64,000 nt of DNA from Cyanophora paradoxa CCMP329. Lineage: Eukaryota; Plantae; Glaucophyta. The notes under the pieces were generated by a model, which saw nothing but the letters and a program-made list of their open reading frames with translations, ran no database searches and was not told the DNA's origin. The number at the start of each line of letters is the position of its first letter. The stretch's first letter is position 1. The position numbers were made by a program, and so were the translations under genes. Of the stretch, positions 2,060 to 63,921 are shown one piece after another. The DNA is taken from contig QPMI01000318.1 of the NCBI GenBank assembly GCA_004431415.1, positions 21,503-85,502 on the forward strand. Direction: 5' to 3'.

Positions 2060-2773
2060 ATGGAAGAAGCATCGCATTCGACCGCGGATGCCGTCAAAGA
2101 TCTGCACAAACGAGTCCGGCGTCTTTCGATTGACACAAAGGAACGCCCCCGGCGCAAATCGCTGGACGACGCAAGTCCGACGACACACGACGTGGTGCTA
2201 CGCGACGAGGTGCGCGCCTACAACTCCGGCGCGCGCGGCCCCCCCCCCACCCGGCGTCGCGCGGACGCGCGCCCGACGCTGCACGTTCGGCCCGCTCCCG
2301 GTTCCGCAGGTCGTCGAAATGCTGAGCAAGCGTGAAGCGAACTCGAAACCGTACGGTGCACTCGTTCTCGCCTCGGCACCGGCGTGCCTCCGTGCTTCGC
2401 AAGAAGCCGCCGAGTCCGGCTGGCGCTTAGATCTAGGCGATCGTCGCGGGTCGGATGGGGGCGTAGATACGCTTATGCATTCATCGACGGGGGAAGCACG
2501 GCAGACACGATGAGCGTGCGGGAGGCGCGGGCGGCGCACATCGCGGGGCTCAGACGGGCGCCGGAAGACGAGGACTTCGATGTGCGCGTGACTGACCGCA
2601 CCATCCGCTGCGGGAAGAAGGAGGACCAGGGCGCGCCCCGCCCTGCCCCGCCCTGCCCTCCGCGGCGGCGGCCGACGAAGCGGGGCGGGGGCAGTCGAGC
2701 TCACCATCCGCGTGTACTCGCCACACCACATGCACGAGGCGGGGGAGGAGCTGCTGCCGGGGATTGTCTGGTT

Positions 2774-2804
<31 letters not shown>

Positions 2805-4209
2805 CCCTCCCCCCCAGTCGGGGCCAACGCCGTCCCCGCTCCTCTGATCCAGTCGGACCCCAGGGCCCATGGCGGTGGCTTTGTTTTGGGCAACCTCGAC
2901 TCTTGCGATGCCAGGTACCGCGCGCGTGCTCGTTGCATGCCTTTTCTAACTTCCTTCCATTCCAGTCTGCGCCTCCTCTGCAACTCCGCCCGCTGCGTCG
3001 TCGTCTCGTGCGCCCGCGCCCCGCCCCCCGCCAGCGCCCGACCCCTCGCTCACGCCCGTCGCCGGGGCAGCGTGGGTGCGGGGGCGGGGCGGGCGGGGCG
3101 GGGCGGGGCGGGCGGGGCGGGCGGGGGGCTCAGGGGGGGCGGGCGGTGCGCAGACTACCGGCTGGCGCCGGAGCACGCGTTCCCCGTGCCGGCGATGGAC
3201 GTCTACTACGCCACCAAGTGGGTCGCCACCAACGCCTCCGCCCTCGGCATCGACGGTCGCCCCCCGCGCCCCGACCCCGCCCCCGCCCCCGCCCCCTCCC
3301 TTCAGCTCACCTTCCCGCCTCTCGTCTGCCGCAGCGAGCCGCCTCGCCATCGGCGGAGGTGCCCCGCCCCGCCCTCCCCGCCCCCGCCGCCCCCGCACGC
3401 CCTGACATGTCGTGGGGACGGCAGACAGCGCGGGAGGTGCGGGCAGCGGGAGCGCGCGTGGGGGCGGGGGCGTGGGCGGGGTTGACGGCGGGGGGCAGGG
3501 AACCTGGCGACGATCGCGGCGATCCTGGCGAAGAAGAGCCGCAGCGTCCGCCTCGCCTTCCAGGTCCTCGTCTACCCCGTCACCAGTGCCTCCCCGGCCC
3601 CCCTCGCGCGCGCGCGCTGCCGGGGGGGCAGAGGGGCGCTGAGGGCGGGGGCAGACTTCGACCTGTCGACGGCCTCGTACCGGCGCTTCGCGAAGGGCTA
3701 TGGCCTCACCGCTGCCGAGATGCTCTGGTTCTGGTCCGCGCCCCGCCCCGCGCCGCCCCCCTGCCCCCGCCTCGCGCCGCCTCCCCGCCTTGCGCCGAGG
3801 GCCGCCGCAGGAGCAAGTACCTGCCGACGGAGGCGGACGGGAGCGACTGGCGGGCCTCCCCCTTGCGCGCCCCGCTCGTCCGCCCCGCCCGCCCCGCCCC
3901 GTCCCGCCGCGGGTGCCCGGGGCGGGGGGCTCAGCAGGGCGGGGCGGGGCGCAGGATGCGCTGCAGCAGCTGCCGCCGACGCTGGTGGTGACGGCGGAGG
4001 CGGACGTGCTGCGGGACGAGGGGGCGGCCTACGCGGCGCGCCTCGCGGCGGCCGGCGTGCGGGTCGAGTTCAGCGAGTACGCCGGCCTCATCCACGGCTT
4101 CTTCCGCCACAGCGACTGCCTGGCGAGCGCGCGCGAGGTCGTCCTCGAGATCGCCGTCGAGCTCTGCGCCGCCTTCTACCGCCCCGACGACCCCGACCCC
4201 GCCCGCTAG
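2060..4209 (+). CDS. Hormone-sensitive-lipase family alpha/beta hydrolase (esterase/lipase), multi-exon
   Basis: Spliced motifs [31 protein letters not shown] (nucleophile Ser), DVLRDEG and IHGFF; stop at 4209. The 5' exon structure is less certain. Confidence 0.92.
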
Positions 4210-4288
4210 CCCCGCCCCGCCCCCACCCCCTCTGCCGCCTCTGCACGCGCGTTTTTTGTGAACAGAGAGCGGGAGAGGGTGGGTGCGG

Positions 4289-7200
4289 CTAGTTGGGGCC
4301 CCTGGCGGCGCGCTTCTGCTCGAGGGTGCGGGCGAGGAAGGGGACGTCGGCGCGCGGGGCGCCCCCGGGGGCGATCTCGAGCTCGAGGGCCGCGGCGTCC
4401 ACGAGGCAGACCTCCTCGCGCCCCTGCGCGCAGTAGTAGACGAGCGCCTCCACGCGGGCCCGGCCGCGCCCCTCGAAGGCGAGCTCCAGCGGCCGCCCGA
4501 CGGCGAGGGCGCCCTCCTGCGCGCCCCGCGCGAGCCGCACGTCGCCCTCGAGCCGCAGCACCTGGTAGCGGCTCGTCGCGCCCTTCGTGGGGGCGTAGCC
4601 CTCGGGGAGGGCGGCGGTGAGGGCGAGGCGCCCGCCGCTGGCGAGGGCCGCCGCCTCCAGCGAGACCGCCCGCCGCGTCGCCAGCGGCGTCGCCTCCTGC
4701 CGGCCCCGGCCCCCCGTCGGCCCCGCCCCAACGCCCCGCGCGGGCGGCGCACCTCGGCGGCGGGCAGGGCGCCGGCGCGGGTGGCGGCGGCGGCGGCGGA
4801 GCGGGCGGCCGCGGCGGCGCGCGTCTCCGGCACGGAGCCGAGGTCGAGGGTGGTCACCTGCGGGGCGCGGGGCGCTCGCGGGGGCGGGGCGGGGCGCGGC
4901 GGGGGGCGGGCCTGGAGGGTGGCGAGGTCGATGGAGCGGATGGCGCCGTTGTTCGTGTCGGCGACGAGCAGGGCGCCGCCGCCCGGGGCCAGCGCCAGGC
5001 CCGCCGGCTCGCTGAACATCGCCTCGCCCGCCGCCCCGTCCCTGAACCCCGCCTTCCCCGTCCTGCGCGCCCCCTCAGGCCCGCGGCGGGCGGGGCGGGG
5101 CGGGGCGGGGCGGACCCGGCGAGGGTGCGGATGGAGGCGGAGGCGACGTCGACGCGCTTGATCCTGCCCGCCCCGCCCCGCCTCGGCTGCGGCGCGGCGC
5201 GGCGCGGGGCGCGGGGCGGACTTGTGGTTGTACGAGTCGGCGACGTAGAGGAGGCCGGTCTCGGGGCAGCAGACGCCGAGCGGGTGCTGCAGGCGCGCCC
5301 CCGACCCCGACCCGTCCACGTCCCCGAACCTGGCCCCGCCCCCTCAGCCGGGCGCGCGGCGCGGGGCGCTGGGGCGGGGCGGGGGCGGACGCGAAGAGGT
5401 TGGCGGCGAGGAGCGGGTCGCCCCCGACGAGCGTCCGCGTCGCCCGCCCCGCCTCGTCCACCACCCGCACCGAGCTGCTCTCCGAGTCCTGCCCCCGCCC
5501 CGCCCCGTCGCGCCGGCACGCTCGCGGGGTGGTCTGGGGCGGGGCGGTGGTGGCGGACGGCGATGTAGAGGACGCCGGTGGCGGGGTCGAAGGCGAGGCC
5601 CGACGGCTGCGCGAAGGCCGCCTCCGCGAGGTCCCGCCCGCTCACGTTCGCGTTCAGCTCCCGCCCGCTCCCCGCCACCCGCCGCGTCTCCCCCGAGGCG
5701 AGCTCGTGGGCCCAGATCTGGTGCGTCCCCGCCATCGCCACGTAGACCGCCCCGCCCCGCACCGCCACGTCCCACGGCGAGCTCAGCTCCTGCGCCGCCC
5801 CCTTCCGGCCGCCCTTGTAGTCCCGCCCCTGCCGCGCGCCCGCCGGCCTCGGGCGCAGGCGGGGGCGGGGGCGGGGGCGGGGCGGGCGGGGGCGGGGCGG
5901 GCCTGGGTGCCGGTGCCGGCGAGGGTGCGGACGCGGCCGGCGGCGAGGTCGACCTCGCGCAGCGCGTGCGCCTCCGTGTCCTGCGCACCCGCCCCTCACC
6001 CCAGTGCGCCCCGCGCCGGGGGGGGGGCCACCCGGCCGCACCGCCACGTAGAGGCAGTCGCGCGCCGCGTCGCTGCGGCGGGGCCCGTCGCGCGCGGCGG
6101 GAGGGGCGGGGCGCGCGCGGGCGCACTAGGCGAGGCCCTGGGGCCGATAGAAGCGCGCCGAAGCGAAGTCGCCATCCTGCAGGCCCGCCTCCCCGCTCCC
6201 CACCTGCCGACCCGCCCCTCGCACGGCGGCCGGGGCGGGAGCGGGCGCGGGGGGTGCGGGCCTGGTCGATGAAGCGGCCGGCGGCGTCGGTGATGACGAT
6301 GCGGTTGTTGTTCGAGTCGCTCACGAAGAGCCGCCCTGCGCCCCCGCCCGCCCCGATGTCGGCAGGGATCGGAGCCCCGGCGCAGCCGCCGCGGCAGCGC
6401 CGCCGCGCGCACCGCCGGCCGAGTCGACGGCGAGCTTGCCCGGGTAGCGGAGGGTGGAGGGGGCGGGGCGCGCGTCGCCCTTGTCCCGCTCGAGGGCGAT
6501 CGGGAGGGGCGCGGCGTTGAGGTCCTGTGCGCGCCGCGGGTGAGGGGCGCGGGGCGGGGGCGGGGCGGGGGCGCGGGGCGCGCGGCGGCGTAGAACTGGA
6601 GCGCGGCGGCGATGAACGCGTCGAGGTTATCCTGCGCCCGCCTCGGCGCCGGCGCGGCGGGGGGGCGGGGCGGGCGCACGCGCTGCTTCTCGCCGGAGAG
6701 GCGGGCGATGACGCGGCCGGAGCGGGGCGAGACGAGGGCGAAGGTCGGCCACGAGTCGACCTGGGGGCGGCGCGGGGCAGGTCGGGGGCGGGGCGGGGCC
6801 GGGCCGGGGGGCGGGTGGGCGGGTGGGCGGACGCCGAGGCGGGACCAGAGGCGCATGGCGGGGTCGTTGACGACCGGGTGCTCGATCTGCGCGCCCCCGC
6901 CCGCCCCCTTCCTCGCTCGCTCGCGGGGCGGGGCCAGGGAGGGCGCGGGGGGCGGGCGGGCCTCGTAGCGGAGGACGGCCTCGCGGATGTTGGCCGAGTC
7001 CTGCTCGTTGTCGAACTTGGCCGAGTGCACGCCCACCACCGCCAGCTGCGCCCCGCCCCGCTCTCCCGCCCCGCCCCCCCGCCCCGCGAGGCCCCGCGCA
7101 CCGCCTCGTGCCGGTACTTCTCCTCCAGGTAGGCCTGCACGGGGCCCTCGGCCCGGCCCCGGCGGGCAGGGCCCCAGGGCGCCCCGCGGCGCACCAGGTC

Positions 7201-8113
7201 CGGCAGCACGTGCTGCGCGGCGCCGGGTCAGCGGGGCGGAGGGGTACGGGGTGGGGTGTGGGGCGGGGAGTATACGAGATACCATACAGTTGATACAACA
7301 GTAGGTCCTTTTTTTTGCGGGGGGCCGGAGGGCGTCAGCGGGCCGGATGGGTGCGGGGCAGGGTCTGGGGCGGGCGGGCCAGAAGTCGAAGAGGACGAGC
7401 TTGCCCTTGAGCTCGCGCTTGGTGCTCAGCGGGCGCGACACGTTGAGCCACTCGAGGCCCTCGGGGAAGTCCCCCACATACAGGCCCGTCGGCGCCCGCT
7501 CGATCTCCTCCCTGCCGCCCCGCACGCGTCAGCCGCCCCGCCCCGCCCCGCCCTCCCGCCCCGCCGCCCCGCCGCCCCGCCGCCGCGCACAAAAACTCCA
7601 TGATTTCGCGCAGGTCGTTGTCCGAGCTACGCACCGCCGAGATGCGTTAGCGGGCCGCTTGCACAGAGGGCGTGCACGCGCGGGGGCGTATGCGCACTAG
7701 GTGGCGGCGTTGGCAGGGAGAACAGCGTTCATGAGGGCGCGCGGCGAGACCTGCGGGGGGTCAGGGCCTCGGCCCAGCAGCGCGGCCGGCAGCAGGGGGC
7801 GCACATAGCGGAGCATTTTGGTGCGATCGATCACCCACGCCATGGAGGCCGTGCCGGCCGCGACGGAAGTCCAGCGGAGGATCTCGCGGCGCGAGACCGG
7901 GCGCCTGCTTGAGCCCGACGCCGGCGAGCCCGGCGCATCAACAGGCTGATTGCCGGCATCCTCCTTCTCCGCCCGCGCGGCCGTGCGGGACGCCCTGTCG
8001 CTGCGCTGCGGCCTCGCGTGCGGTTCGGCCGGCGCGCGTACGGCTTGGCCCAGGAACGCGCGACGACCGGCGACGCCCACCGGCAGTGACGAAACAAACG
8101 CCAGCTGCTCCAT
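4289..8113 (-). CDS. SOQ1/NHLRC2-like protein: transit peptide, RR-containing membrane segment, thioredoxin-like domain, NHL beta-propeller, C-terminal domain; no HAD domain
   Basis: MEQLAFVSS N-terminus; SRREILRW + hydrophobic helix + SPRALMN; FWTYCCINCMHVLPDL; VVGVHSAKFDNEQD; NHL repeats (LRYPGK, SSPWDV, MAGTHQIW, FAQPSG, LQHPLGV, FSEPAG); YYC near the C-terminus. Confidence 0.9.
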
Positions 8114-11868: not shown

Positions 11869-14265
11869 ATGGCGGGCAAGGATGCGGAGGTCACCTCCGA
11901 CCTGAAGATGACCAGCGCCGCGGGCGGCGGCGCCGGCATCTACCTGATTGTGCAGCTGGCGGTGGTCCTGGCTCTGGGCGCTTTCTCCTACTTCACCATC
12001 GTCCCCATGCTTGGCGACGCGACGAGCCTTCCGGCGCGCTTCGTCGCCTACACGCAGGAGAACGCCCTGGTCTGGCAGATTCCCGCGTTCTTCGTGTCGT
12101 GCTATGTGGCGTTCCGCCTGGTCTTCTCGCTGTCCAACTCGGTCAGCTCGAAGCCGGCGAAGCTCTACGAGCGCGCCAAGTCGAGCGATGTGCGTGATGA
12201 GATATCGCGCGCGCGCGCCGGAGGTCGGGCGCGGCTGACCAGGGACGCGTCCCGCGCTCTGCTGCTTCGTCGCGCAGGACTTCTACGATGTCGCCATCGT
12301 CGGCTCGGGCCCCAGCGGCTCGGTCTGCTCGTTCTACCTCACTCGTGATCACAAGGCGCGTGTCCTGGTGCTCGAGAAGAAGAAGTTCCCCCGCGACAAG
12401 TACTGCGGCGATGCCGTCCCCGCTGCCTGCCACCCCATCATGGTTCGCGCGCCGCCGGCGCGCGTCGGTTATTTTCGTGCTCACGCCGCCGCAGGACGAC
12501 ATGGGCGTGCTCAAGCAGATCCTCGACGCCAAGAAGGGCCACCCGGTACAGTTTTGTTTAGTTACGCGACTTCTTTCGCGCCTAAAATGACTCCGCAGGC
12601 CGACAACGGTGGCATGATCAGCCCCGGCGGTCTCACTTTCATTGGGCGCTCGGCCGGCGAGATCGGGCGCAACGCCGTCATCGGCATCCGCCGCATTGTG
12701 CTCGATGAGCACCTGGCCATGGCCTCCCGCAAGGCCGGCACCGACCTTAAGGAGAACAGCGAGGTCATGGTGCGCCGACGCCCGCCCCGCCCCGCCCTGC
12801 GCCGGGCGGGGCCCTCAGGCTTGTGCAGGGCGCCAAGTTCGACCGCTCCACCGGCCTGTGGACCATCGAGGTTAAGCGCTGGGAGGGCGGCGCCGACAAC
12901 GAGTGGGCCGTCGAGAACATGACCGGCGAGAACAAGTCCACCGGTCCGCGCGCCGCATCCGCCGCGCCATCCCGCGCGTTGGCTCACTTCGCGCTGCTTT
13001 GCAGAGGTGATCACGTACAAGGCGCGCGCGCTGGTGTGCGCGGACGGCGCGACCTCGACCCTTGCTCGCAAGCTCGGCATCGTCAAGACCGCCCCCGAGG
13101 GCGTCTGCTCCCGCGCCTACGTCCAGGTCCGTGCGCCGCTCCGCGTCCCGGCGGCGCGGGCGGGGCGGGGTGTGAGCGTGGCGGGGGCGCAGGGCGACTC
13201 GCACAACTTCAAGGCGGACGGCGTCGTCTTCTACCCGCCCAAGCTCCTGCCCGGCTACTGCTCCGTCTTCCGCGTCGGCGCCGACCAGCACGACCTCTCC
13301 TTCTGCTGCTACATCATCCCCGGTCCGCCCGCCCCCGCCCCCGCCCCCGCCGCCCCAGCGCCAACGTGATGAGAACTGGATTCCCCTTCGTGATCACTCG
13401 CTGAACGAACAAAAAACACAGCTCACTCTGATTCCGCGCCCTCCAAAAAACCAAATAAAGCTAGTTGCCGGCGGCGTGCGCCGGGGCGCGGCTGACGCGG
13501 GGGAGCGCTGCAGGCAACCCGAAGGTGACGGAGAAGGAGCTGCCGACCCTGCACCACGACATCATCAAGAACGACCCCTACGTCTCCAAGGCCCTCGGTC
13601 CGCCCGCCCGCCGCTCGCGAGCCGTGCGCGGCGGGGCCGGGGCGAGCGGGCGGGGGGGCGGCAGGCCCGAACGCCAAGCTGGAGCGCATGAAGGCGGCGT
13701 CGCTGCGCCTGGGCGGCGTGCCGAAGAGCTACGGCGAGCACGTCGTGCTCGTCGGCGACGCCGCCGGCACCATCGACCCGCTCACCGGCGAGGGCATCCA
13801 CACCGCCATGATCACCGGCAAGATGGCCTCGATCGTCCTCGGCGAGGCGATCAAGACCGGCAACTACAGCGAGGGCCACATGGCCAAGTACCACGCCATG
13901 TGGATGAAGGAGTTCGGCGCCGACTTCTACTGGTCGATGAAGGGCGCGCAGCTCCTGTACAAGTTCCCGCTGCTCCTCGACGCCGCCTGCGCGGCCGTCC
14001 AGCGCAAGGGGCCCGAGTTCCTCGGCGAGTGGGCCCTGGTGCGTTCCTTGGCCCCGCCTCGCCCCGCCGGCGCCCGGCGGCTCACGGGGGCGGGGGGCAG
14101 ATCATGACGAACCAGCGGCCGAAGATCGACCTGATCAAGCCGCGCATCGCCTTCCCGATCGTGACGGAGATCATCTCGCAGTTCGTCCAGCAGAAGATCC
14201 TCGGGCGCCCGACCCCGCGCTCCAAGATCGACAAGGAGCTCGCCGCCGCCAAGAAGGACAAGTAG
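11869..14265 (+). CDS. Geranylgeranyl-reductase-family FAD-dependent oxidoreductase with two N-terminal transmembrane helices
   Basis: DVAIVGSGPSGS, LEKKKFPRDKYCGDA, RIVLDEHL, LVCADGATS, LVGDAAGTIDPLTGEGIHTAM. Confidence 0.88.
13361..13436 (+). ncRNA. Intronic box C/D snoRNA, probable snR71/U29 (SNORD29)-like guide for LSU rRNA
   Basis: AT-rich island in an unusually long intron: box C GTGATGA 13366-13372, box D CTGA 13428-13431. The D guide AAACACAGCTCAC complements conserved LSU GUGAGCUGGGUUU (1 mismatch); a second guide GGATTCCCCTT complements LSU AAGGGGAAUCC (rRNA sequences from memory). Confidence 0.8.
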
Positions 14266-14634: not shown

Positions 14635-17377
14635 ATGCTGTGGCTCGTGTCCTGGGGCATCATCGCGGTCCTCTTCTACGTAGTTCTGAAGGGTTTCCGC
14701 GGCCCGCCGGCGGCAGCGCTCAACAAGGATGGCTTCGACCCGAACTCGCTCGACGCGTTCTTGCACACGAACTACTCGGCCGAGGAGCTCGTGAAGGGTG
14801 CGCCAGCCCGCCGCGCGCGCGTGCCCTGCCCGGCACTGCGTGCCGGCCCAGACCAGCTGCCCGGCGCCGCCAGCTCGACGCACGGGCGTCCCTCGCGCGC
14901 CCGGTGATTCCGAGTGACTGACTGAGCGCTGCGCGCCGCGCGCGCCGCGCCGCGCGTCTCCGTTGCAGCCGCGAAGCCGCAGCTGCTGGTGGAGGACAAC
15001 AACCCGGGGCGCGCGGTGCTCGTCTTCTACGGCACTGAGTACGGCGCCTCGAAGGAGATTGCCTTCAAGCTGGGCGACCGCCTCAACGAGGAGGGCGTCT
15101 ACAAGGCCCGCGTGATCAATTTGATCGACCACAAGGCCATCGACTTCTCCCAGGAGCAGGCCGTCATGATCGTCTGCTCCACCGCCGGCGACGGTCAGCG
15201 CCGCCCGCCTCCGCGCGAGCCGAGCGTTGCCCCGGGCTGGTCGCGACCTCGGCGGGATTGCTGACGCGAGCGCGCAGGCGTGCCGCCGACGGAGGCGAAG
15301 CCGTTTTTCGAGGCTCTCGAGGAGAGCAGCGTGGTGATCCCCGCAGGCCTGCCCTACTCCGTGCTCGCCCTCGGCGACAGCAACTACCCGCACTTCTGCC
15401 GCTGCGGCCGCACCATCGACGCCATGCGCGCTCCTCGCCTCTTCCGCTCCTTTCTGCCGGTCTCGCTGAGGCGTGCGGGCAGGATGGCGGAGCGGGGCGC
15501 GGTGCGCTTCTTCGAGAAGAAGGACGTGGACCAGGAGGACTGGGGGGTCATCAACTCCTGGATCGCCGGTGCGGGCCCCCGGCGGCGCCGCCGCCGCCGC
15601 CCGGCCCGACGCGGCGGCAGGCGTCCACCGCGCCCTCAAGGGCCTCAAGATCGAGGTCCGCGACGAGTACCTCGCCGGCCTCGTGCGCGACCGCCCCGCC
15701 CCGCCCCGCCCCGCCCCGCCCCGCCCCGCCCCGCCGGGGCCGCGGGAGGGCGAGCCGGGGGCGCAGGAGAGTATCGCGGGGAAGGAGGGCGGGGAGGGGT
15801 CGTACAGCCGCTCGAAGCCCTTCATGGCGCCCGTCGCGGTGAAGCGGACGATCACCAAGGTCGAGGCCAAGGGCGACTCGGACGTCATGCACATCGAGTT
15901 CGACCTCTCCGGTCCGCCCCGCCCCGCCCTCCCACCCCGCCCCGCTCTCGCACCCCGCCCCGCGCCCCGCCCACCCGCCGGCAGGTTCCGAGATCAAGTA
16001 CGTGCCCGGGGACGCCCTCGGAGTCTGCCCCAGCAACAACCCCAAGACCGTCGCCGTCCGCCCGCCCCCGCCCACCCGCGCCGCCCGCGCCGGCGTCCGA
16101 CGGTCCCGGCCCACGCCGCGCGCGCAGGCGATCCTCAAGCGCTGCGGCTGGTCGGGCAAGGAGAAGGTGGCGGCGCCCGCCTGGTACCCCAAGGAGGAGG
16201 TCCGCGCCCCACCCCCGTCCGCCGGCGCGGGGCCGGGGCGGGGTGCGAGGGCGGGTCGGGGGCAGGGGGAGACGGAGATGCCGCTGAAGGACGCGCTGGC
16301 GCACTGCTACGACCTCAAGACCGTCCGCGGCGAGCTCCTCCGCACCCTCGTCGACGAGTGGCTCCCCGCCGGCTCCCCGCAGGGGGAGAAGGCGCGGGGG
16401 CTGCTGGCGGGGGGCCTGGGGCGGGACAACGGGGCGCTGGCGGGGTACCTGGAGCCGCGCGAGGTGCTGGACGTGCTCGAGGAGCACCCGGCGGCCGCCC
16501 CCGCCCCCGCCGCCCTCCTCAAGGCCCTCAAGCAGCTCCTCCCCCGCTACTACTCCATCTCCTCCTCCCCCCTCCACGTCCGCCACCCTCGCCCGCCCCC
16601 GCGCACCCTCCCCTCGGACCGACGGGGCGGCAGAACGCGGAGCGGGTGAGCATCACGGCGGGGGTGGTGCGGTACGAGACGCTGGGGAAGGGGCGGGAGG
16701 GGGTGTGCACGACGTTCCTCTCGGACCGGGTTGCGGTCGGGGCCAAGGTGCCCATCTTCATCAGCCCCAACAAGGACTTCCGCCTCCCCGCCGACCTCGC
16801 CACCCCCATCATCATGGCCCGGCCCCGCCCCACCTCGCCCCGCCCCGCCCCGCCTGACGGCCGCGCAGATCGGGCCGGGGACGGGCCTGGCGCCGTTCCG
16901 GTCGTTCCTGCAGCACCGGGAGCTGGCGGCGAAGGAGGCCGGGGCGGCGATGGAGGCGGCCGCGAACGTGCTCTTCTTCGGCTGTCGCCACGAGGCCAAG
17001 GACTTCCTCTACCGCGACGAGCTCACCGTCCGCGCCCCCCGCCCCCGCCGCCCCCGCCCCCGCCCCCACCGAGTCCCCCGCAGAAGCTGGCGGACGGGAA
17101 GAAGCTGCGGCTGCACACGGCCTTCTCGCGGGATCAGGCGGCGAAGGTCTACGTGCAGCAGCGGCTGCGGGAGGCGGGGCCGGCGGTGTGGCAGGCGATC
17201 GCGGCCGGGGGCCACGTGTACGTGTGCGGCGACGCGAAGCACATGGCGGCGGACGTGCACGCCGCGCTGCTCGAGGTGGCGGCCGACCAGGGCGGCCTCG
17301 GCTCCCTGCAGGCCGCCCAGGCCCTCTTCGACGACCTCGTCAAGCAGCACCGCTACCAGCGCGACGTCTGGGCCTGA
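14635..17377 (+). CDS. Membrane-anchored diflavin (FMN/FAD/NADPH) reductase, cytochrome P450 reductase / CysJ-like
   Basis: N-terminal TM helix; flavodoxin motifs [26 protein letters not shown]; [52 protein letters not shown]. Confidence 0.9.
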
Positions 17378-17598: not shown

Positions 17599-19434
17599 CT
17601 AGCGGAAGCGGATGCGGGCGGCGGGGAGGGCGGAGCGGATGGCAGCGAGCTGGTCGGGGAGAAAGGGGTCGCCCCGCGGTGCCCGCACCTCGAGCTCCCG
17701 CAGGCGCGCCAGCGGGGCCAGGGCCCCCGCCGGGGCCCCCGCGCTGAAGAGGCGGCAGGGGGAGCGGAGGCGGAGGGCTGCGAGGGCGGGGGCGGCGGCG
17801 AGGGCGGCGACGAAGCGGCGCGGGAGGAAGGCGGCGGGCTCGGCGGCCTCGAGCTCGGCGCGGCGGAGGCGGCCCCACGCGCCCAGCGCCTCCCCGCCAG
17901 CTCCCGCAGCTCCCCGCCGGCACCCGCAGCCGCAGCACCTGCCGCCCGCACCCCGTCAGCGCCGCGGGGCGGGCGGGGCGGGCGGTGCCTGCCTGGAGTT
18001 CGGCGAGGGCGAGGAGGTCGGGGGCGAGGGGGGACCCGAGCGGGCCCCGGCGGGTGGCGCGCGGGGGCGGCGCGGGCGAGGGCGAGGGAGACGAGGGGGA
18101 GGGCGGCGAGGGGCGCGGCGGAGGCCCCGGGGCGAGCTCGACGTCGAGCTCGCGGAGGGCCCCGAGCGCCGCCAGCGGCCCCGCGTCCAGCAGCGGGGCC
18201 CCGATCGAGAGCGCGGCGAGGCTGCCCGCGAGGGGCCGGAGCTGGGCGAGGTCGGCCGGGGGCAGGGCGGGGGCGGCGGCGGTCTCGACGCCCTCGGCGC
18301 CGACGAAGCCGACGGTGAGGCGCTCGAGGCGGGCGAGCTGGCCCAGGGCGGCGAAGGCGGCGGGGAGGCCCATCGCCCCCGCGTCCCGCAGCGTCACGAG
18401 GAAGGAGACGGCAAGCTCGCGGAGGCGGGGCGCCAGCTGCCCCGCCAGCGCCCCGAAGAGCTGCGGGGCCACCGGCAGGCAGCAGAGGCGCAGCACCTCC
18501 AGCCGCTCCAGCGCCCCAATCGTCGCGAGGGAGGCCGGGGTGAGGATGCGGGAGAGGGCGACGGCGCGGCAGCCGTACTGCGCCGCCTCGGGCATCTCGA
18601 AGGAGAGGCGGCGGAGGCCCCCCGGCAGCGCCTCCAGCAGGGGCTCCGGCGCCAGCTTCGTCACGTGCTGCAGCGCCACCGACACCTCCAGCCCTGCGCC
18701 CGCATCGGGCCCCGCGCGGCGCCCCGCGCGGCGCCCCTCGCACCCTCCACGTGTATCTCTCGCAGGTGCTCCATCCCGGCCCGGCTCAAGCAGCAGGACG
18801 GCAGGCACAGCGTGTCGAGCTCCGGTCGGAGTCTCGCCAAGTTCCTCGCGTCCCAATCGGAGGCGCTCAAAAGCGCCATACGCCGATCCAGCAGGTGCTC
18901 TTGTATCACGGTTCTCCACCTGACCGTCAACGCCGCAGGTTAAAAGCTTGGGGTTGTCGCTTTCGGGTTGGGGTTCTGACCGTTTAGACACTCGCACGAG
19001 CGCAGCGAACACCGTGGCGTCGATGCTGTCGTATCAAAATGTTTTGGAGGGCGGCGCGCTCAGGTGCGGGGCGGCGCGGCCATGCGTGCGGGCAGGGCGG
19101 CGCACGCAGTGACGCGCTCCTGTCCCCAGGAACGCAGCCGAAGCGTGCGTTCCCAGCTCTGCCGGAGCAGTGTCAGTGCGACGGAACTCGGCGCGCACGA
19201 CTGCTGTCGATAACGCGGGAGTCGGAGAGCGGGGCGCACGATTTCCATCGATAACTTGGCGATGACCCATACCAGGTCGTCTGGCAGAGGCTCGAAAGCG
19301 TCGGGGTCCGCATGCGGCAGGTATACATCGTCTGCGCCGCCAGAAGGCCCAGCTAGCGGCGGCTCATCGACGTCGCCTGAACGCGTCCCAAGCTCAGCGC
19401 TAGCTGCGGCCGGCTCCGGCGGCTCCGGGTCCAT
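17599..19434 (-). CDS. F-box / leucine-rich-repeat-like protein
   Basis: [15 protein letters not shown] is F-box-like; repeated LxxLxL units ([33 protein letters not shown]). One apparent 1-nt frameshift near 17890. Confidence 0.6.
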
Positions 19435-19830: not shown

Positions 19831-19959
19831 TCACTTGGCGGCTAGCTAGGGGCGCGGGGTCACTTGGCGGCTAGCTAGGGGCGCGGGCTCACTTGGCGGC
19901 TAGCTAGGGGCGCGGAGATCTCGAGATCTCGGGCTAGCTAGGGGCGCGGGGTCACTTGG
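19831..19959. repeat. 29-bp tandem repeat that copies the HisRS stop-codon / 3'UTR junction
   Basis: TCACTTGGCGGCTAGCTAGGGGCGCGGGG units start at 19831, 19860 and 19889, plus the native copy around the stop at 19952. Confidence 0.9.
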
Positions 19960-29104: not shown

Positions 29105-29416
29105 CCCCGCCCCGCCCCGCCCCCCGCCCCGCCCCGCCCCGAGCCCCGCTCCCTCCCTCCCCTCGCCCCCCGCCCACCCGCTCCCGCCACGCTCCGCACC
29201 TTCCCCTCGCCTCGCTCTCTGCCACCCGACTATCGGAGTCGCGCCCCTACGCTTTCTCACTCCCCTCCCTTGATCCCCGGTTCCCCGGCTCCCTTCCAGC
29301 CGACCCCTCGCCCTTGCTCCCCTGGCAGCCCCACGCAGTGCAGCTCCCCTCCCCCGCAGTCAGTGTCGAGAGGCCTCTGTGCTCCGCTCCCATGCAGCAG
29401 ACGCCGAGGCAGCAGG

Positions 29417-45742: not shown

Positions 45743-45844
45743 CGTCTTCGGCTGATGCCGCTGCTGCTTGTGGATCGGGGTCCGCGCAACGCGGCGACGC
45801 TCACAGCGCACTGCTGTGCCACCTGAGGCGCCTGCGTTCTGTGG

Positions 45845-45890
45845 CGGACAGCCGCGGACAGCTGCGGACAGCAGCGGACAGCTGCGGACT
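45845..45890. repeat. Short tandem repeat (GCGGACAGC-type units) between divergent genes
   Basis: GGCGGACAGCCGCGGACAGCTGCGGACAGCAGCGGACAGCTGCGGAC between the RAB3GAP2-like and WD40 start codons. Confidence 0.75.
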
Positions 45891-45955
45891 CAGTGGCGGG
45901 GTACGGTCGACGGAAGCACCGCGCATTGGCTAACGCCGGCGCGGCGAGTACTTCG

Positions 45956-54121: not shown

Positions 54122-56021
54122 TCAGGCGGCGGGGATGGGGGCTGGGGAGCCGTGGGGGCGGGCATGGGCGCTCTTGAGCTGGCCGCAGGCGGCCATGATG
54201 TCGCGACCGCGGGGCCAGCGGACAGTGGCGTACTGGTTGAGGTCGTTGAGCAGGGCGGCGAACTTGATGATCGTCTCCTTGGAGGAGCACTCGAGGCCCG
54301 AGTTCTCCCAGTTGTTGAAGGGGATGAGGTTGACGAGGCTGGGGATGTGCTTGAGGAGGCGGGCGAGCTCGCGGGCGTCGGCGGGGCTGTCGTTCACGCC
54401 CCGCAGCATCGCGTACTCGAACGTCACCCGCCGCGCCCACGAGAGCTCCGGGTACCGCACAACCGCCTCCAGCAGCTCCTTCAGCGGGTACGTCTGCCGC
54501 GGGGTCAGCGAGGGCCGGCCCCGAACGGGGCGGGCCGCGGGGCACCTTGTTGATGCCCATGAGCTCGGAGCTGGGTGCACGCGGACGTGAGGCGGGGCGG
54601 CGGGGCGCGGGGCGGGGCGGGGCGGGGACCGGAGGTCGTCGCGGGGGGCGTGGAGGGAGACGGCGAGCTGGACGCCGAGCTCGCGGCCGAGGGTCTCGAT
54701 GAGAGGCGCCACGCCCGCCGTCGAGACCGTGATCTTGTGCCGCGAGATCGAGAGCCCCTCCGGGTCCATCAGCGTCTGCGCCCCCGCCCTTCACGCCCCG
54801 CCCAGCCCCCCCACCCCGGCCCCCGACTAGCCTGGATCGCCGCCTTGACGTTGCGGTAGTTGTAGAGCGGCTGCGCGCCGGCCGGCGTCAGGCGGGGCGG
54901 GGCCGGGGCCGGGGCGGGGCGAGGCCGGGGCGGGGGTGCGTGCCTCGCCCTGCCCCATGAAGACGACGTGGGTGAGGGCCTTCTTGGTGGGCCCGCGGCG
55001 CTCGGCGAAGTCCCCGAGGGCACGGCGGGCGAGGATCACCTGCCCGACGATCTCCGAGGCGTGCAGGTTGCGCTCAAGCCGCTGCGTCCCCGTGTGGCAG
55101 AAGCGGCAGCTCAGGCTGCACCCCGCCTGCGACGAGACGCAGAGCGTGCCCCGCGCCAGCCCGCCCTCCTCCGCCTCCTGCGGGATGTACACCGTCTCCG
55201 CCGCCACCCCGCCGAAGGAGACAAGCCACTTCCGCGTGCCGCACCTGCCGGCCGCGCCCCGCACCCCGTGAGGCCCCGCAGCCGGCGCGCTGGGCGCGGG
55301 GCGACGCGGGGCGCACTCGGCGGAGGTCCGGTCGTCCTTGACGGCCCCCGCGCTGATCTCGAAGTGCTCCGCTGCACGGCCCCCGCGCCGCCCATCGGTG
55401 GCGTGCTTTTGGCGGCTCAGAGAGGCCGCACCGAGCTTCTCTTTCAGCTGCCGGTTGATGTTCTTCATGCCCGCGAAGTCCGAGACGCCATGGTGGTTGA
55501 TCCAGCTGCAAGCGGCCGAGTGTCAGTGCGGGCTGTCGTGCTCAGAGGCGCGCGATCCGACTGGACTCGCCTGAAGACTTGTTGGTGCCGGAACGACTCG
55601 AGTCCAATCTAGGCGCTAAACTGTGAGTGCAGGCGGTCGTGAACCGTGGCAGGGCTCGCCTTCGCGAATTCCTCCTTCATCACCGACCGCGGCATCCCGA
55701 TGAGGTTCTTGCGTGTCTGCGCACGGCCTCTGGTCAACGCGCACGCCATCGGCCGCGAGCGCGCATGCGCAGGCGATCGGGGAGGAAGCAGCAGCACACC
55801 GGCGCCGCAGCCGATGTCGGCGCGCTCTCGTTGCGAGGTCCCGCGCGAGCCAGCACCGCTTCGGGCCGGCTACATCCCGCGGCCACCGAATCGAGCGTTC
55901 CAGGCGGCGGTGCAGGGGCCTCGTGGGCGTCTACGGCGCTCACCCCGACCAGACGCCGCACCCCGCGCTGCACGTGGCACCTCGCAGCCGAAGCGAAAAG
56001 CGATCCACCGGCACGCTGCAT
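54122..56021 (-). CDS. rlmN: RlmN/Cfr-family radical-SAM RNA methyltransferase, probably organellar
   Basis: [19 protein letters not shown] (CxxxCxxC), [48 protein letters not shown]. Start codon approximate. Confidence 0.93.
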
Positions 56022-56221: not shown

Positions 56222-59200
56222 ATGGCGTGGCAGCAGCACGGCGTGTGGCAGGGTCGCGTGGCTCCGCCCGCGTGGGCTTCCGATCCGCCTCCAGCGGCCC
56301 TGCAGCCGAGCTTCTCGCTCTCCGGTTACGTGCACGCGCAAGCGTTGAACATGGCACAACAGCCCCCACCGCCGCCGCCTCTGCGATCGGCGCATCGACA
56401 GTCCACAGCTGTGAGCAGCGCTCGACAAGCACAGGCTTCGTTCGTAGCCACAGAGATGGCCGCCGTGTCGCGCCCTGTCCCGAGCGGACCTTTTCTCACT
56501 CCGAAGGCGCGCATGCACAACCGCCTCCGCGCATGCGCCCAGTTAGATCATGCGCCCAGCGTATTATCCCGCGCCGTTCACGCCCCTCTGGTCTTGTGCC
56601 CTTTTTCAATCGATGGCTGACATGGTTCGGGCGCAGGACCCCTTCACAGACCCGCTTCCCCTGCAACCGGTGGCCACCTTTCACGTCAGTGACGACACGC
56701 TGCACCCAGGCATCCAGCGGCTCCCGCACACGACGTGCGCGCTCCCTTCTTTCCTCGATGCGCCCCCGTCGCCTCCCCTGACAATTCAAGAAGGACCTTC
56801 AACCTTCTGGTGGACAAGGCGCACTGGGCTCGAGTCCACAGGTGCGGGCATCGCCATTTTGCTCCCTAAGAACGCCCAGCCGATCGGAGTGGTCCAACGC
56901 GCAGGGGACCGCCGCCATGCGAGCCTCGGCCGGGGGAGAGCCGCGTTCGCCTGCAGCTCATGACCTTCGCACAGCAAGCCCCAAGCGCGCCTTTCCTGGC
57001 CCAGTGGCCCGCGGGCGTTCGCCTTCAGATCAACGGGCGCCTGGTCAGCGTCGAGCAGAAAGTCCGCTCTGCCCGCCCCGCCCGCCCCGCTCGGCGACTC
57101 AGGCGAAGCGGGGCGCGGCACAGAAAAACCGGGCGGACCGAGGGCTGGACATCACGGACTACATCAGGCCGGGAAGCAGCAGCCGGCTGGAGTTCTTCAC
57201 GGAGACCGGCAGGGTGCGCCCTTGCGCGCGCTCCCGAGGGCGGCGGGCGCGGCGCGCGTGAACGGGGGCGGGGCGGCAGGCGTTCGTGGGTGTCGTGCGG
57301 CTGGTGCGGGTGCGCTCGGTCGCGGAGCTGGCGGCGAGCGTCCAGGAGCGGGAGCGGGAGAGCTACGAGGAGGCGATCGAGGGCGGTAGGCGGGGCCGGG
57401 GCGGGGCGGGGGGGCGGGGCGGGTGCGAGGGGGCGGGGCGGGGGGCAGTGCGGCGGCTGCTGGGGCACGAGGACGAGGAGATGGAGGCGGTGTCGGCGCG
57501 GCTGCCGCTCCTCGACCCCCTCTCCAAGCAGCGCATCGAGGTCCCCGCCAAGGGCGACCTCTGCCGCCACGTCCAGGCCCGCCCCGCCCCGCCCCCCCGC
57601 CACGCGAGGGCGCGCGCGGGGGCGCTGAGGCGGCGCAGTGCTTCGACCTGAGCACGTACCTCGCGATGAACGAGCGGGCGCCCACGTGGAAGGTGCCCTG
57701 CCCCCCGCCCCCGCCCGGCGGAGCGGGGGAGGCCGGGGCGAGACGGGGCGTGCCTGCAGTGCCCGGTGTGCAGCCGGGAGGCGCTCTTCGGGGGCCTGCG
57801 GGTGGACGCGTACCTCGAGCGCGTCCTCGCGGAGGCCCCCGCCGGCACCCCCGACGTCGCCGTCCACCCCGACGGCCGCTGGGCCTCCCCCGGTGCCCTT
57901 GCGCCCCCACCCGCTCTCCCCGCCTCTGCTCCCGCCCCGCCCGCCCTCTCACACGCCGGTGCAGGGGCCCCGGAGGCCGGTGGCGCGGGGGCGCTGGGGG
58001 AGGAGGCGGGGGCGGGGGCGGGGGCGGGGGCGGGGCAGGCGGCGGGCGTGATCGCGCTGGACTCGGACGAGGAGGAGGCCGGGAGCGAGCCGGCGCCGAT
58101 GCCCTCGCCCCCGTCCCCCGCATCCTCCCCCTCCCCGGCCCCGCCCCGCGCTCCTCCCCGCCCCCGCCTCCAAGCGGGGCCCTCGCCGAGCAGCCCCGCC
58201 GCGACCGCGACAAGCGCCACCGCAGCCACCGCGCCGCTCCCCGCCCCCGCCCCGCCCCGCCCCCGGCCCCCGCCGCGCCCCCGCCGGGCGGGGGCCGGCC
58301 TCTGGGGGCGCCGTCATCGACCTCACCGCAAGCGACGACGAGGATGCCCCGCCGCCCGCGTCGCCCCTGCCCGCGGTGCGCGCCGCCCCGCCCCCGGCCC
58401 GGCGCGCGCGTGGGCGCGCGCGAGTGCGAGGGGGGGCGCAGTGAACGCGGCGGCGCCGCCGTACACGTTCGCGCTGGCGGCGCAGATGGCGATGAACGAG
58501 AGGGCCCTGGGGCCCCTCGGCGCGGCGGAGAGCTGGCGCTTCGAGACGCTCCGCCGCCACGCCGCCGCCAGCATGCGCCCCGGGGCGCCGGCGGCGGCGG
58601 CGGCGTACCGCTCCTCGGACGGCGAGGACGACTCGACGGACACGGAGAGCGAGGAGGATGAGGAGGCCGCCGCCGCCGCCGCCGCCGAGCAGGCCTCCGC
58701 GCAGCGGGCCCAGGCGCGCTTCGCCCGCCTCGCCGCCGAGCGCCTTGCGGCGGCCGAGGCGGAGGCGCGGGGGGAGCAGTCGCGCGGCCGGCGCCGGCTG
58801 CGGCGCCTCGCCTCCTCCTCGCCCGAGGACGGGGGCTCGGGGAGCGATGACGACGAGCCGGCCCCGGCCCGCATGCCCGCCCCGCAGCCGCCTGCCCCGC
58901 CCTCCAGGAGCCCCCGCCCTCCCGCCCCCGCAGGACCGTCGGCGGCAAGCGGCCGCCGCCCTCGCCACCCCGCCGCCGCCGCCGGCGGCCGCGGCGGGGA
59001 GGCGGTCCGGGCGGGGGCGAAAGGGGAAGGAGGCCGTGCGGGAGGGGTCGCCGGCGGGGCGGGGCAGCCCGCGGCGGGGCGGAGCTCGCGCGGCGCGCCG
59101 GCGGAGGGGCGGAGGCGCGCGCCGCCTCCCCGCCGGACTCGCCCCCGTGCCCCATGCCCGACGACGAGCCGGCCTCGCCCGCCAGCGCCGCCCCCGACGA

Positions 59201-59875
59201 GGCCCCCGCTTCCCGCTCCTCCCGCCCTCCCTCTCCTTCCGCCGCCCCCTCTCTGTGCGCCCCGCCCCACCCCGCCCCGCCCCGCTGCCTGTGACGGCCC
59301 GCGCAGGCCCCGCCGGCCCCGAGTCGCCCCCGAGCCGGTGCGGATACGCGCGGCGGCGGCGCCCCTCGCGGCGGGGGAGCAGCCGCCGCCGGGCGCCGTG
59401 CGCGTGCGGGCGGCGCGGGACGAGCCGCCCGCCGCGCCCTCGGCGGCCGAGCCGGCGCGCCTGCGCCCCATCCGCGTACGCATGCGCGGCTCCGCCAACG
59501 CACCGCCGGCCGGCCCCGCACCGGCCGCCGGCGAGAATGCGGCGGGGAGGGGGGCGGGAGGCACCGAGCCCGGGGTGGCGGCCCCTGCAGCTCTCCACCG
59601 CCGCCGTCGCCGCCGCCGCGCAGCCGCAACAGCCGCAGCCGCAGCAGCGGGCGGGCGGGGAGCGCCTCTGGGGCGCCATGCGCGATGCGCCGGCGCCGGC
59701 GGCGGCGCCTGCTCCGGCAACGGCGGCGGCGGCGGCCTCGTCGTCGGCAGCGGCGGCGGCTGCGGAGGGCGTGGGCGGCGAGGCGGGGGCCGCCGGGGCG
59801 GGGGACGGGGACGTGGACGAGGACGAGGCGATGTGGAACGGCATCTTCCAGCAGCTCATCCGCGAGGGCCACTGA
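56222..59875 (+). CDS. SIZ/PIAS-like SP-RING (MIZ zinc finger) SUMO E3 ligase with a long low-complexity tail
   Basis: LPLLDPLSKQRIEVPAKGDLCRHVQCFDLSTYL...TWKCPVC; SIM-like VIALDSDEEE and VIDLTASDDE. The tail has apparent frameshifts. Confidence 0.85.
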
Positions 59876-60006
59876 CGCGCCCCTTGCATGGCGCGCGGCG
59901 CTGAGCGCAATCCCACCCGCCCTGCCTCCCTCTCCTCCTCTCTCCCTCGCTTTCTCTAAATTGAATAAGTCGGCACGTCACACGGCGTGCGTGGGGCGGG
60001 GCGGGC

Positions 60007-63000
60007 TCAGGGGCGGGGCGGTGCTGCGAGAGCGACGAAGGCGTCCTCGAGGGAGGGCGAGGAGGGGGCCCAGGCCGCGACGGGGCCCCCGGGCAGCAGG
60101 CGGCCCCGCTCGAGGGCCTCGCAGGCCGCCCGGAGCGCCCCCGGGGGCACCCGCGCCACGAACGAGGCCTCGTGCAGCGAGACCACCCGCGCCTGCCGCC
60201 CCGCCCGCCACCCGCTCGCCCGGCGCGGGGCGGCGCGGGGCGGCGCGGGGAGGCGCAGCGGGGTAGGGCGCGTGCGCACCGCGGGGGGAGGAGGGCGAGG
60301 GCGGCGGCGCGGCGCCGGGGGCCGGGGCGCAGGAGACGGCGAGGGAGAAGCGGTCGAGATCGGGGCCGGCGGCGGCGAGGAGGGCGCGGGGCGGGTGGGC
60401 GGTCGCGACGAGGCGGCCCTCCGCCAGCACCGCCACCCACGTGCACAGCGCTGCCCCACCCCCGTCAGCGGCCCGCGAGGCGGCCGCTGGAGCGGGGCGG
60501 GCGCGGGAGCAGGGCGGGCCCTCGTCTCGGCGGCGCTGTGGGAGGTGAGGAGGTGGCGCGGGAGGGGTGGCGGGCGGCGGCGAGGAGGGCGGCGGCGGCG
60601 CGGCGGTGCTTGGGGTCGAGGGAGGAGCCGAACTCGTCGAGGAGGAGCAGGCGGGCGCCCCCGCGAGGGCCACCGCCAGCTGCAGCCGCCGCCGCATGCC
60701 CCCGCTCAGCTCCCGCGCCCGCCGGTGGCCCTCCCCCTGGAGGCCGACCTGCAAGGGGGTGAGGGGGCGGGGGCGGTGCGGGCGCGGGGGGCGGGGGCGG
60801 GGGCCTGGGCGAGGAGGGCGGCGGCCTCGCAGGCGGCGTCGGGCACGCCCCTCACCCGCGCGAAGAGCAGCACGTGCTCCCCGGCCGTGAGGTCCCCCCA
60901 CAGGGCCTCCCCCTGCGGGCAGTACCCGATCGCCCCGCCCCCCGCCCCCCCGCCCCGCAGCCGCCTCCCCTCCAGTAGCACCGCCCCGCCCGACGGCTCC
61001 AGGCGCCCCGTGAGGACCCTGCCAGCGCCCCGCCCGCTCAGCGGCGCTCGCGATCAGACGCCGGGGAGAGACGGCCCCGCACTCGAGGAGGGTGCTCTTT
61101 CCTGCCCCGCGCGCGTCGGAGAGGAGCCTCGGAGGCGAGGCAGAGGGAAGCGGGGTGCTCACCGGCGCCGTTGGAGCCGACGAGCCCGAGGAGCTCCCCG
61201 CCGCGCACCTCCAGCGAGACCCCCGCCAGCGCCGCCCGCCCCGCCCCCTCGTACCGCTGCCCCCCGCCCCCCGCCCCTCGCCCCCCGCGGGGCGCAGGCG
61301 GTGGACGAGGCGGGCGCACGACGGTGAGGTCCCGCACCGCCAGCAGCGCCGGCGCCCCGGCCCCGGCCCCGCCCCTCGCCCCTCCACGTCTCTAGCCCCT
61401 CCCCTCCCCGCCGCGCCCTCCTCGCCGCTTCCCCGGTCCCTGTGCGCGGGCCCGTCACGCGGCACCGGCGCCGGCGGCGGGGGCCAGCACGGGACGCACA
61501 GGAGGGCGGCGCGAGCCGGCTCATCGGGAGCGGGGTGCGCGGGCGGCGGAGGCGGCGGAGGGCGCGGCGGAGCGGGGCGAGCGGGGAGGCGGCGGGGCGG
61601 GCCCGGGTCGAGGGCGAGGGCGAGGGCGGCGAAGGCGGCGGCCTGGAGGGCGAGGGGTGGATGTCTGAGCTCGTGTACACCGGGGGTGTATACCTGGAGT
61701 CCGAGGGCGGCGAGGGAGGAGCGCAGCTGCGGGACGCTCCCGTCCAGCAGCGCCCCGGCCCCGCGCACCGGCCCGCCCCGCACGCCCCCGACAGCGCCGC
61801 CACCGCCCGCGAGGCCGCCGCGTGCGGCAGCGCCGCCGCCCACAGCGGCAGCCGCTCTGCCACCGCCCCGTGAGGCCGCGCGGGGCGGGGCGGGAGGACG
61901 GCGGGCGGCGGGGCGAACGATCTGGGTAGGGTACACGGCGCCGAGGGCGATGGCGATGAGGGAGAAGAGGAGGGCGGCGGCGTAGCCCAGGGCGGCGGCC
62001 CGCGGGCGGCGCACGAAGGCGGCCGCGAGGTGCGCCAGGCCCACCTGCGCCCCGCGCGGTCGGGCGCGAGGCCGGCGCGGGGCGGCGGGGCGGGCGGTGC
62101 CTGGGCGAGGCCGAAGAGGGCGGCGAGGGCGGCGAGGAGGGCGGGGGAGGTCTGCGTGAAGAAGCGCGCCCGCAGCAGCAGCGCCCCCGCCCCGCGAACG
62201 CTGCGCCGCCCTCGCCCCCGAGGCGGGCGGGGAGGCGGGCGGGCGGGGGGGCGGGCGGACCGAGGCAGGAGGCGGCGTAGAGGAAGAGGGCGGCGGTGGC
62301 GTGCGCGGCGTGCAGCACCACGGCCCCACCCGGCCTGCCCGCCTCGCCCGCCCGCCTCGCCCCGTCCGCGGCGCGGCGCGGGGGCGGGGCGGGGCGCACG
62401 AGGGCGAGGAGGCCGGTGAGGCCGGCGCTGCGCTCCTGGACCAGGGCCGCAGCGCGGCGGGCAGGAGCGGGGAGAGGGCGAGGGGTACAGGGCGGCCTCC
62501 AGGGCCGTCAGCACGCGCCCGACGAGGGCCGCCAGCGCTTCCTCCCGCGGCCACGCCTGCAGCGAGGCCCGCACCCGCAGCCCCGCCCCCGCCCCTGCCA
62601 GTCCCCGGCCATCAGCGGCGCGCGGCGCACGGCGCGCGGGGGCGGGGGGCGCCGTGGGCGGCGGCGAGTGCGTGGGCGATGGAGAGACGGGCGTGGGCGG
62701 GGTCGACGCGTGTGCCGGTGCCGTCGTCGAAGAGGGCGAGGTCGTTGCGGCGGTGGTTCTGCCACAGCGCGTTCTCGTTGGCCTGCACCGTGAAGCGCAG
62801 CCGCCGCGGGCCCGCCTCCTCCACCTCCACCACCCCGTCCGGCACCTGCGCCACGCACAGAGCCGCGCGCGGGCGGTGCTCGCTGTCAGGAAATGCACTC
62901 TAGCTCCGGGCGATGCGCGGGAGCGTGGGGGGCCGGGCACGGCGTCGCGGAGGGCGGAGCGCTTGATCTGCTCGACGGAGCGCCGGTTGTACTCCCGCAG

Positions 63001-63921
63001 CGCCGCCGCCACCGCCTCCTCCACCGCCCTCCCCGCCCCCGCCCCGCCCCGCGCCGACGTGAAGTTCTCTGCAGCCACCCTGCCCCGGCACGCGCGCCCG
63101 CTCGCCGTCATGATCAGGCGTCCCTCCAAAGCCCCGAGGGGGGGGAGCGCGCCAGTAGGGGACCTGCGTGCGGGTGGGTGAGGGTGGCGGGACGGCCGGG
63201 GGCGCGAGGGCGCACCAGGATGAGGTTGTGGAGGGGGTCGAAGGGCGAGGGGCCCCGCTCCCAGTCCCTGTAGTCCCGGCAGATCGCCTGCTTCACCCGC
63301 CCCAGGAGCCCTGCCGCTGCAAGCGCGCGAGGGTCGGCGGCCACGCGTACGGGCGCTCACGCGCACGAAGGCGGACCCGATCCCGCCGGGAGACGAGGCT
63401 CCGACGCGTTCACGTCGAATCCGTCGCGGCCGCTAAAGCCGAGGAACGCCGCGGCTCCGGGCGATGGATCGCTGTTAATCACGACGAAGTACTCGTTGCA
63501 CTCCAGGCCTTCCGCCCACGTCCTCTCCGTCTGCGACTTGCAGAATGAGAACCCAAGGCGTGCGCACCGCGGCAACCGGACCGCATTCGGGAGAGCGCCG
63601 CGTACGCGCGGGTCTAGCTAGCGCCTCCGCTTGCGCACCTCTGCACCGAGCGGACGCGGCGGCCAGTAGACCGGGAGAGAGCCGAAAACTTTTGAGCGGA
63701 TAAGCAACTCCAATGAGGCGAGCAGCGCGATCGCCACGAGCGGAGATAGAATTTGGCACAGCGTGTGAGATCGCGCGCGCCACTGTAGAGTCGCGTCCTT
63801 GGCAATCTGCATGAGTACGTTTTCGTGCGCGCGCGCCACGGCGCAGGCGAGCGAATGGGCTATGCACACGCATGCGCACCAGAGCGTAGAGTGTGCGGGC
63901 CGCCCGCGGCGCGCGGGGCAT
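60007..63921 (-). CDS. ABCA-subfamily half-size ABC transporter
   Basis: N-terminus AL|IAKDATLQWR...QILSP + TM helix; TM bundle; Walker A GSNGAGKS, IGYCPQ, signature LSGGMRRRL, Walker B LLLDE, H-loop LTSH, SLEDAF. Apparent indels present. Confidence 0.88.

Follow-up and report, generated by a model that had tools for sequence, protein, structure and literature searches.

Can protein-coding DNA encode the positions of nucleosomes, and does chromatin dictate how a gene is laid out in exons and introns? These old questions, which have mostly been debated on the basis of weak signals averaged over whole genomes, are raised by a stretch of 64 kb from the glaucophyte Cyanophora paradoxa (contig QPMI01000318.1; this whole stretch is called the window), in which gene bodies alternate between G-rich and C-rich blocks. 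This G/C wave runs through introns and synonymous codons, and its switches from G to C (G-to-C flips, or nodes) recur at roughly 162 bp and multiples of it. With a probability of about 55%, the wave is an extreme nucleosomal signature written in G and C only, with nucleosomes on exons and introns between them. Literature searches turned up no account of the pattern, as the first-pass annotation of this DNA had supposed. All results within the window concern this single stretch, about 96 G-to-C spacings and gene models that are mostly computed.

The wave is best read at silent sites, which in gene bodies are 97% G+C, so that the sole remaining freedom is which strand carries the G. The RNA-supported 312-nt exon 16266..16577 (+ strand) had been described as ending its codons in G, C, G and C by turns, and its four-fold third bases count 6 G/0 C (16266-16300), 1 G/16 C (16301-16376), 22 G/2 C (16377-16475) and 0 G/21 C (16495-16577), the internal C-to-G flip near 16377 occurring without an intron. 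This exon lies in a diflavin reductase gene (14635..17377, +, RNA-supported) with a strong wave (r +0.37/-0.35) and G-to-C flips at about 15019, 15339, 15537, 15853, 16308, 16494, 16760, 16971 and 17282. Across the 23 gene models, 4,581 G/C-ending four-fold sites confirm that third codon positions carry the wave: their autocorrelation is +0.36 at 1-20 nt (z +50) and -0.17 at lags of 81-120 nt (z -17 to -19), with a weak peak of +0.03 near 170 nt and a larger one of +0.09 near 310 nt (z +10), the z-scores referring to shuffles within gene and within codon family. A four-fold site is G in about 79% of cases in a G-rich neighbourhood and in about 15% in a C-rich one. This is true of all twelve flanking contexts, and four-fold sites that stand alone between a T and an A obey the wave as well (0.81 versus 0.15).

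The choice of G or C is a regional state that behaves alike on the two strands: it changes from G-rich to C-rich at each node and returns gradually before the next; + and - genes show the same pattern, in line with the claim that gene orientation is immaterial, and k-mer counts correlate with those of their reverse complements (r 0.79). Codon positions 1 and 2 are nearly flat, with Glu and Val up and Asn down in the G phase. Codons ending in A or T are rare and invariant with wave phase, and the choice between Ser AGY and TCN, a two-step change, varies with it (odds ratio 3.1). Blocks do alternate, at about 100 nt each (median 104 nt for C, 96 nt for G); the spacing of 150-250 bp first estimated by eye needs correcting, since full cycles range from 100 to 500 nt. 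The histidyl-tRNA synthetase (HisRS) exon of about 700 nt that was said to keep the wave (708 nt, 21220..21927, -) contains four G-to-C flips (about 21281, 21569, 21701 and 21878) and three C-to-G flips, and the whole HisRS gene (19952..23641, -) contains 17 G-to-C flips, many of them 140-180 nt apart. Several interior flips also occur in the 560-nt exon of an LRR-like gene (18140..18750, -), and in exons of at least 240 nt the wave is retained 60 nt or more away from the nearest splice site (z +16.6 at short lag, -7 at 81-120 nt). Its amplitude is zero in the first 300 nt of genes, reaches a plateau past about 1.2 kb and tracks four-fold GC content (82% to 98%) across genes (rho 0.59) and along them; the wave is weak in RPL12 and eIF4A3 and missing from spliced 5' exons. 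The suggested G-quadruplex/i-motif potential is present as 185 pattern matches, a potential only. Searches within the window for a 10-bp period of introns (pentamer repeats account for the peaks seen at 5 and 10), for neighbour-base copying and for phase-dependent A/T loss were negative.

A small gene finder, for which two RNA-supported genes served as the training set, produced the gene models, and these were then curated. Gene names were read off translations with the sole exception of HisRS, whose joined translation is 99.3% identical in a local comparison to EukProt EP00741 Cyanophora paradoxa tig00001339_g8272. Four apparent single-base assembly slips were bypassed solely for codon phase; runs of G or C in the assembly seem to carry erroneous one-base insertions or deletions at 27627, 30455, 32069, 32248 and 15946, the last base being absent from a short-read contig. 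The 171 confident introns that were kept have a median length of 61 nt, GT or GC donors and 87% GC, in a genome whose published GC content is 67.6%, with 9.2 short introns in the average gene (PMC6704402). RNA-type contigs from three runs show ten exon joints within 11800-17500 and agree by length with further joints, with zero letter differences. As these and short-read DNA contigs hold no alternative letters over 11800-17500, the wave is no assembly artefact.

Flips were obtained by segmentation of annotated silent sites into G and C blocks under 36 settings. The G-to-C spacings cluster at 140-180 nt, at 300-340 nt and at about 460 nt, that is, roughly 162 bp with its double and triple in genomic coordinates, and the best period lies at 160-172 in 36 of 36 settings. 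This lattice has an R of 0.42 in genomic coordinates and of only 0.06 in spliced ones. Shuffling block lengths lowers R from 0.43 to 0.18 (p<0.0002; p 0.002 for + genes and 0.005 for - genes), the lengths of a C block and of the following G block compensating each other, and shuffling exons and introns together with their own flips leaves R at 0.22-0.26 (p<0.001). In all, the lattice withstands four nulls at p<0.001 (unimodal fit, flips redrawn within exons, exon/intron shuffle and block-length shuffle), and exon mirroring is borderline (p 0.05). Spacings cluster near 170, 160 and 320 when 0, 1 or 2 introns intervene. A hidden-phase model gains a modest 9-13 units of held-out likelihood, for 156-180 bp only, with the G-to-C rate concentrated 7-fold at one phase and introns peaking at the opposite phase. 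Correspondingly, introns peak 80-90 bp on either side of a node, and in intervals of 290-350 nt the skipped node still shows a dip in intron density and a partial reset of the skew. Every second node is used in the RlmN-like radical SAM gene (54122..55700, -), whose flips at 54389, 54704, 55034, 55344 and 55658 are 315, 330, 310 and 314 nt apart. Strictly cyclic waveform models have their best periods at 162-174 and 312-336, but they were rejected because models with free blocks fit better. The distances between G-to-C flips suggest, without so far demonstrating it, that a code spaced by chromatin is superimposed on the protein code.

If nucleosomes underlie the wave, the lattice of about 162 bp (156-180) would be the nucleosome repeat, with some nodes skipped (320 and 460 bp). 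By analogy with Paramecium (PMC8997360), the G-to-C nodes would be dyads on exons, and the introns of about 61 nt would straddle linkers. Less firmly, the skew may be maintained by weak selection on silent sites, as a signal for nucleosome positioning or remodeller direction that is spelled out in introns and synonymous codons. Like the signatures of this kind, the wave is asymmetric and palindromic in its base profile whichever strand the gene is on, and it repeats over a nucleosome-sized genomic distance, here on annotated silent sites; it behaves as a nucleosomal signature and is a candidate, as yet unproven, for membership of that class. The chromatin phasing initially proposed is partly supported, in so far as a nucleosome-sized G-to-C ruler of 160-170 bp exists in genomic and not in spliced distance; it falls short in that no period is sharp and splice sites anchor the wave strongly. 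A bolder version, tentative and below even odds, holds that every silent G/C site belongs to a near-digital, selected nucleosome-positioning code and that codon choice is set by chromatin position, not by translation. If it is true, dyads and intron positions could be read directly from the sequence of a single gene.

Several observations weigh against the nucleosomal explanation. Under the same segmentation settings, C-to-G flips and donors are not quantised. The spectrum of the raw sequence, where a sharp period had been predicted, is a broad hump at 220-360 nt with no sharp line, and raw sequence did not yield the lattice when gene models were left aside. Neither start nor stop codons set a significant phase, a ladder from the ATG having failed a shift test. 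The midpoints of flip-bearing exons alone give an R of 0.39, most of the lattice, so that lattice and gene architecture are entangled. Intergenic DNA lacks the wave (non-genic r 0.011 versus genic 0.048, from only 9.5 kb of non-genic DNA at 61% GC). Exons of 260-450 nt usually hold one G-to-C flip, which is a point in favour of either splice anchoring or frequent node skipping. The assignment of nodes to dyads rather than linkers would stand or fall with the analogy drawn above, and no nucleosome map or repeat length for C. paradoxa was found in the literature. Finally, the nucleosomal signatures known from yeasts, unlike this wave, extend to intergenic DNA and involve all codon positions.

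The rival that survives best, though we consider it unlikely, is selection at the RNA level anchored to splice sites: C-rich donor flanks and G-rich acceptor flanks would label splice sites that are weak, often having a GC donor and lacking a polypyrimidine tract, and about 160 nt would simply be the modal length of an exon plus an intron. Profiles in sense orientation are indeed strong on both strands, donors being C-rich from -60 to +40 and acceptors G-rich from -20 to +60. As noticed at first pass, introns tend to span the C-to-G switch and exons the G-to-C switch (67 of 85 C-to-G flips are intronic, as are 4 of 92 G-to-C flips, for an intron content of 33%), and C-to-G flips are placed 20-60 nt past donors. 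In exons shorter than 170 nt, flips lie mid-exon and their position scales with length (slope 0.56); in longer exons the slope is 0.12 +/- 0.23 and a lone flip falls some 40-90 nt inside one of the exon ends, the 35-95-nt exon-end window having been picked post hoc after inspection of the data. Pure exon-length scaling is therefore valid only below 170 nt and was rejected as a general rule; the averaged gradient stretches in long exons, and individual exons switch sharply. Donor spacing has a mode at 140-160, and the exon/intron architecture alone is mildly periodic at 160-168 (p 0.014-0.05).

Against splice anchoring, the three main intron types comprise only 53 C-to-G introns among the 171, besides 50 all-C and 19 all-G introns. 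Removal of the all-C, flip-free intron 17028..17083 (+) fits the length of an RNA contig (342 nt between pieces, equal to two modelled exons), which indicates that splicing does not require a C-to-G flip. The wave state is continuous over splice junctions, each half of an intron carrying on in the state of the exon next to it (rho 0.49 and 0.36). The same C trough precedes stop codons, where a donor is absent, and spliced 5' exons have no wave. Flips occur in the interior of long exons, and neighbouring silent sites predict the base better than splice distance does (cross-validated area under the curve, AUC, 0.81 versus 0.74, with persisting residual autocorrelation; 0.80 versus 0.64 in exons of at least 260 nt), which bears out the earlier statement that the wave is not only a splicing signal. 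A scale is thus present at four-fold sites and splice distance does not explain everything, so that neither of the outcomes named at first pass as fatal to the wave came true. The lattice is also lost under shuffles that preserve architecture. Were splice anchoring correct nonetheless, the wave would still represent an undescribed scheme of exon marking.

An improbable explanation, sharing the lattice with the nucleosomal signature and differing in its cause, is a neutral mutational footprint, left where damage, repair or lagging-strand synthesis acts in a strand-polar way with respect to positioned nucleosomes, which would be visible because silent sites are GC-saturated. The exactness of the k-mer strand symmetry, the dependence of amplitude on four-fold GC and the weak wave of RPL12 and eIF4A3 are in its favour, and repair is known to differ between the 5' and 3' sides of dyads (PMC6961582). 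It would, however, require a swing of about 20-fold in transversion odds, the reason for which, in our judgement, selection is favoured over repair asymmetry alone; the phase invariance of A/T-ending codons, the response of serine codons to phase and the absence of the wave between genes also speak against it. Still less probable, and already largely refuted, is the formation of blocks by hairpins of the pre-mRNA or by slippage of self-spreading (CCCCG)n microsatellites: the two halves of an intron do complement each other in composition and pentamer repeats are frequent, but the folding of introns does not surpass that of local shuffles (z +0.08) and is poorer than that of two-intron chimeras, which speaks against sequence-specific hairpins, and slippage cannot produce the wave at isolated T/A-flanked four-fold sites.

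As the signal settles four out of every five synonymous codon choices exon by exon, its relation to chromatin can be tested locus by locus with micrococcal nuclease (MNase) or existing methylation reads. Models of codon bias and synonymous divergence in glaucophytes need changing, and gene prediction and transgene design for C. paradoxa could improve.

Other gene bodies with the wave are those of an esterase/lipase (2505..4209, +; G-to-C flips at about 2594, 2765, 3198, 3536, 3695, 3854 and 4074), a thioredoxin-like/NHL-repeat protein (4289..7800, -; 12 G-to-C flips), a MAP kinase (+), an RCC1-repeat protein (-) and a methyltransferase (+) within 26870..32722, an amine oxidase/mutase-like flavoprotein (36770..39282, +), the 3' parts of two WD40-type genes (-, +; 44480..47944), and SIZ/PIAS-like (+) and ABC transporter (-) genes (57030..63341) whose models are reliable only in part. 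The wave is weak (r 0.13) in a FAD-dependent oxidoreductase gene with RNA-supported introns (11869..14265, +). Between convergent 3' ends, the regions 4209-4289, 17377-17599, 29104-29417 and 59875-60007 are short, C-rich then G-rich, and intron-like. GC donors are common (40 of 171 confident introns, including 9 of 16 in the flavoprotein gene) and scarce among all-G introns (1/19). An AT-AC intron (37288-37366, +), with a U12-like 5' end and a branch-like motif, restores the reading frame when removed, pointing to a possible minor spliceosome. Microexons of 5, 12 and 25 nt (3071-3075, 3425-3436 and 7283-7307) encode conserved motifs, namely the esterase GDSAGG region and a thioredoxin-like CxxC. 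A 412-bp unit repeated 3.9 times at 99% identity within a gene (49713-51317) reflects either recent amplification or an assembly error. Downstream of the HisRS gene, its stop region recurs in 29-bp tandem copies (19830-19963). The intergenic tracts 700-1900, 19500-19830 and 32900-34600 are AT-richer and made of short palindromes, and segment 33600-33880 recurs at 34230-34570.

Among known systems, the nearest are the nucleosomal signatures of fission and budding yeast, which are palindromic nucleotide asymmetries about dyads, usable via synonymous codons (Quintales 2015, PMC4422121; Gonzalez 2016, PMC5088595) and able, when placed there, to position nucleosomes (PMC5088595). They share with Cyanophora an asymmetric palindromic profile of nucleosome scale, independent of gene direction and carried in coding DNA. 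The yeast signatures emerge from averaging tens of thousands of nucleosomes and lie mainly in A/T. Unlike them, the Cyanophora wave is confined to G/C and to gene bodies past about 300 nt, can be read in a single exon, nearly spares codon positions 1-2 and skips nodes; the yeast signatures are tied to mapped nucleosomes, whereas this wave is known from sequence alone. In Paramecium tetraurelia, introns lie at nucleosome edges (PMC8997360). Both organisms have short introns between nucleosome-sized exon units, with a repeat of about 151 bp in Paramecium and a putative one of about 162 bp here, but Paramecium has AT-rich 25-nt introns and a GC-content signal, in contrast to the longer GC-rich introns and strand-skew signal of Cyanophora. 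Repair asymmetry at dyads (PMC6961582) would likewise yield a dyad-antisymmetric skew on both strands; it concerns UV lesions and C-to-T changes, and near-digital G/C blocks are not among its shown effects.

The wave of C. paradoxa HisRS (+0.27/-0.15) is far above that of GC-rich orthologues (one gene per species): in Raphidocelis, Chlamydomonas incerta, a pedinophyte and eight GC-rich metagenomic eukaryotes, r is -0.07 to +0.09 with no significant trough. Huff and Zilberman reportedly found in 2014 a linker CG methylation periodicity in Dnmt5 algae (summarised in PMC12695648), likewise a sequence periodicity of nucleosome scale in algal gene bodies. The analogy drawn with it at first pass is not supported, since CpG/GpC is flat and trendless across the lattice within the window (0.93-1.12) and C. 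paradoxa is described as having DNMT1/DNMT3 and as lacking gene-body methylation except for some rise toward gene ends (PMC12344493). Wave amplitude and GC climb toward 3' ends, parallel to the unexplained 3' methylation of expressed genes (PMC12344493). A metagenomic green alga of 77% GC (L015 8460-8870, 11250-11407) has introns of opposite polarity, G/purine-rich at the 5' side and C/pyrimidine-rich at the 3' side, and no synonymous wave. Splicing-coupled strand asymmetries and G-run enhancers cause skew steps at splice sites. Both are treated in a review (PMC10030826). Compared with them, the order in Cyanophora is reversed, with a C-rich donor side and often a G-rich acceptor side, and the wave dominates synonymous choice and extends far from splice sites.

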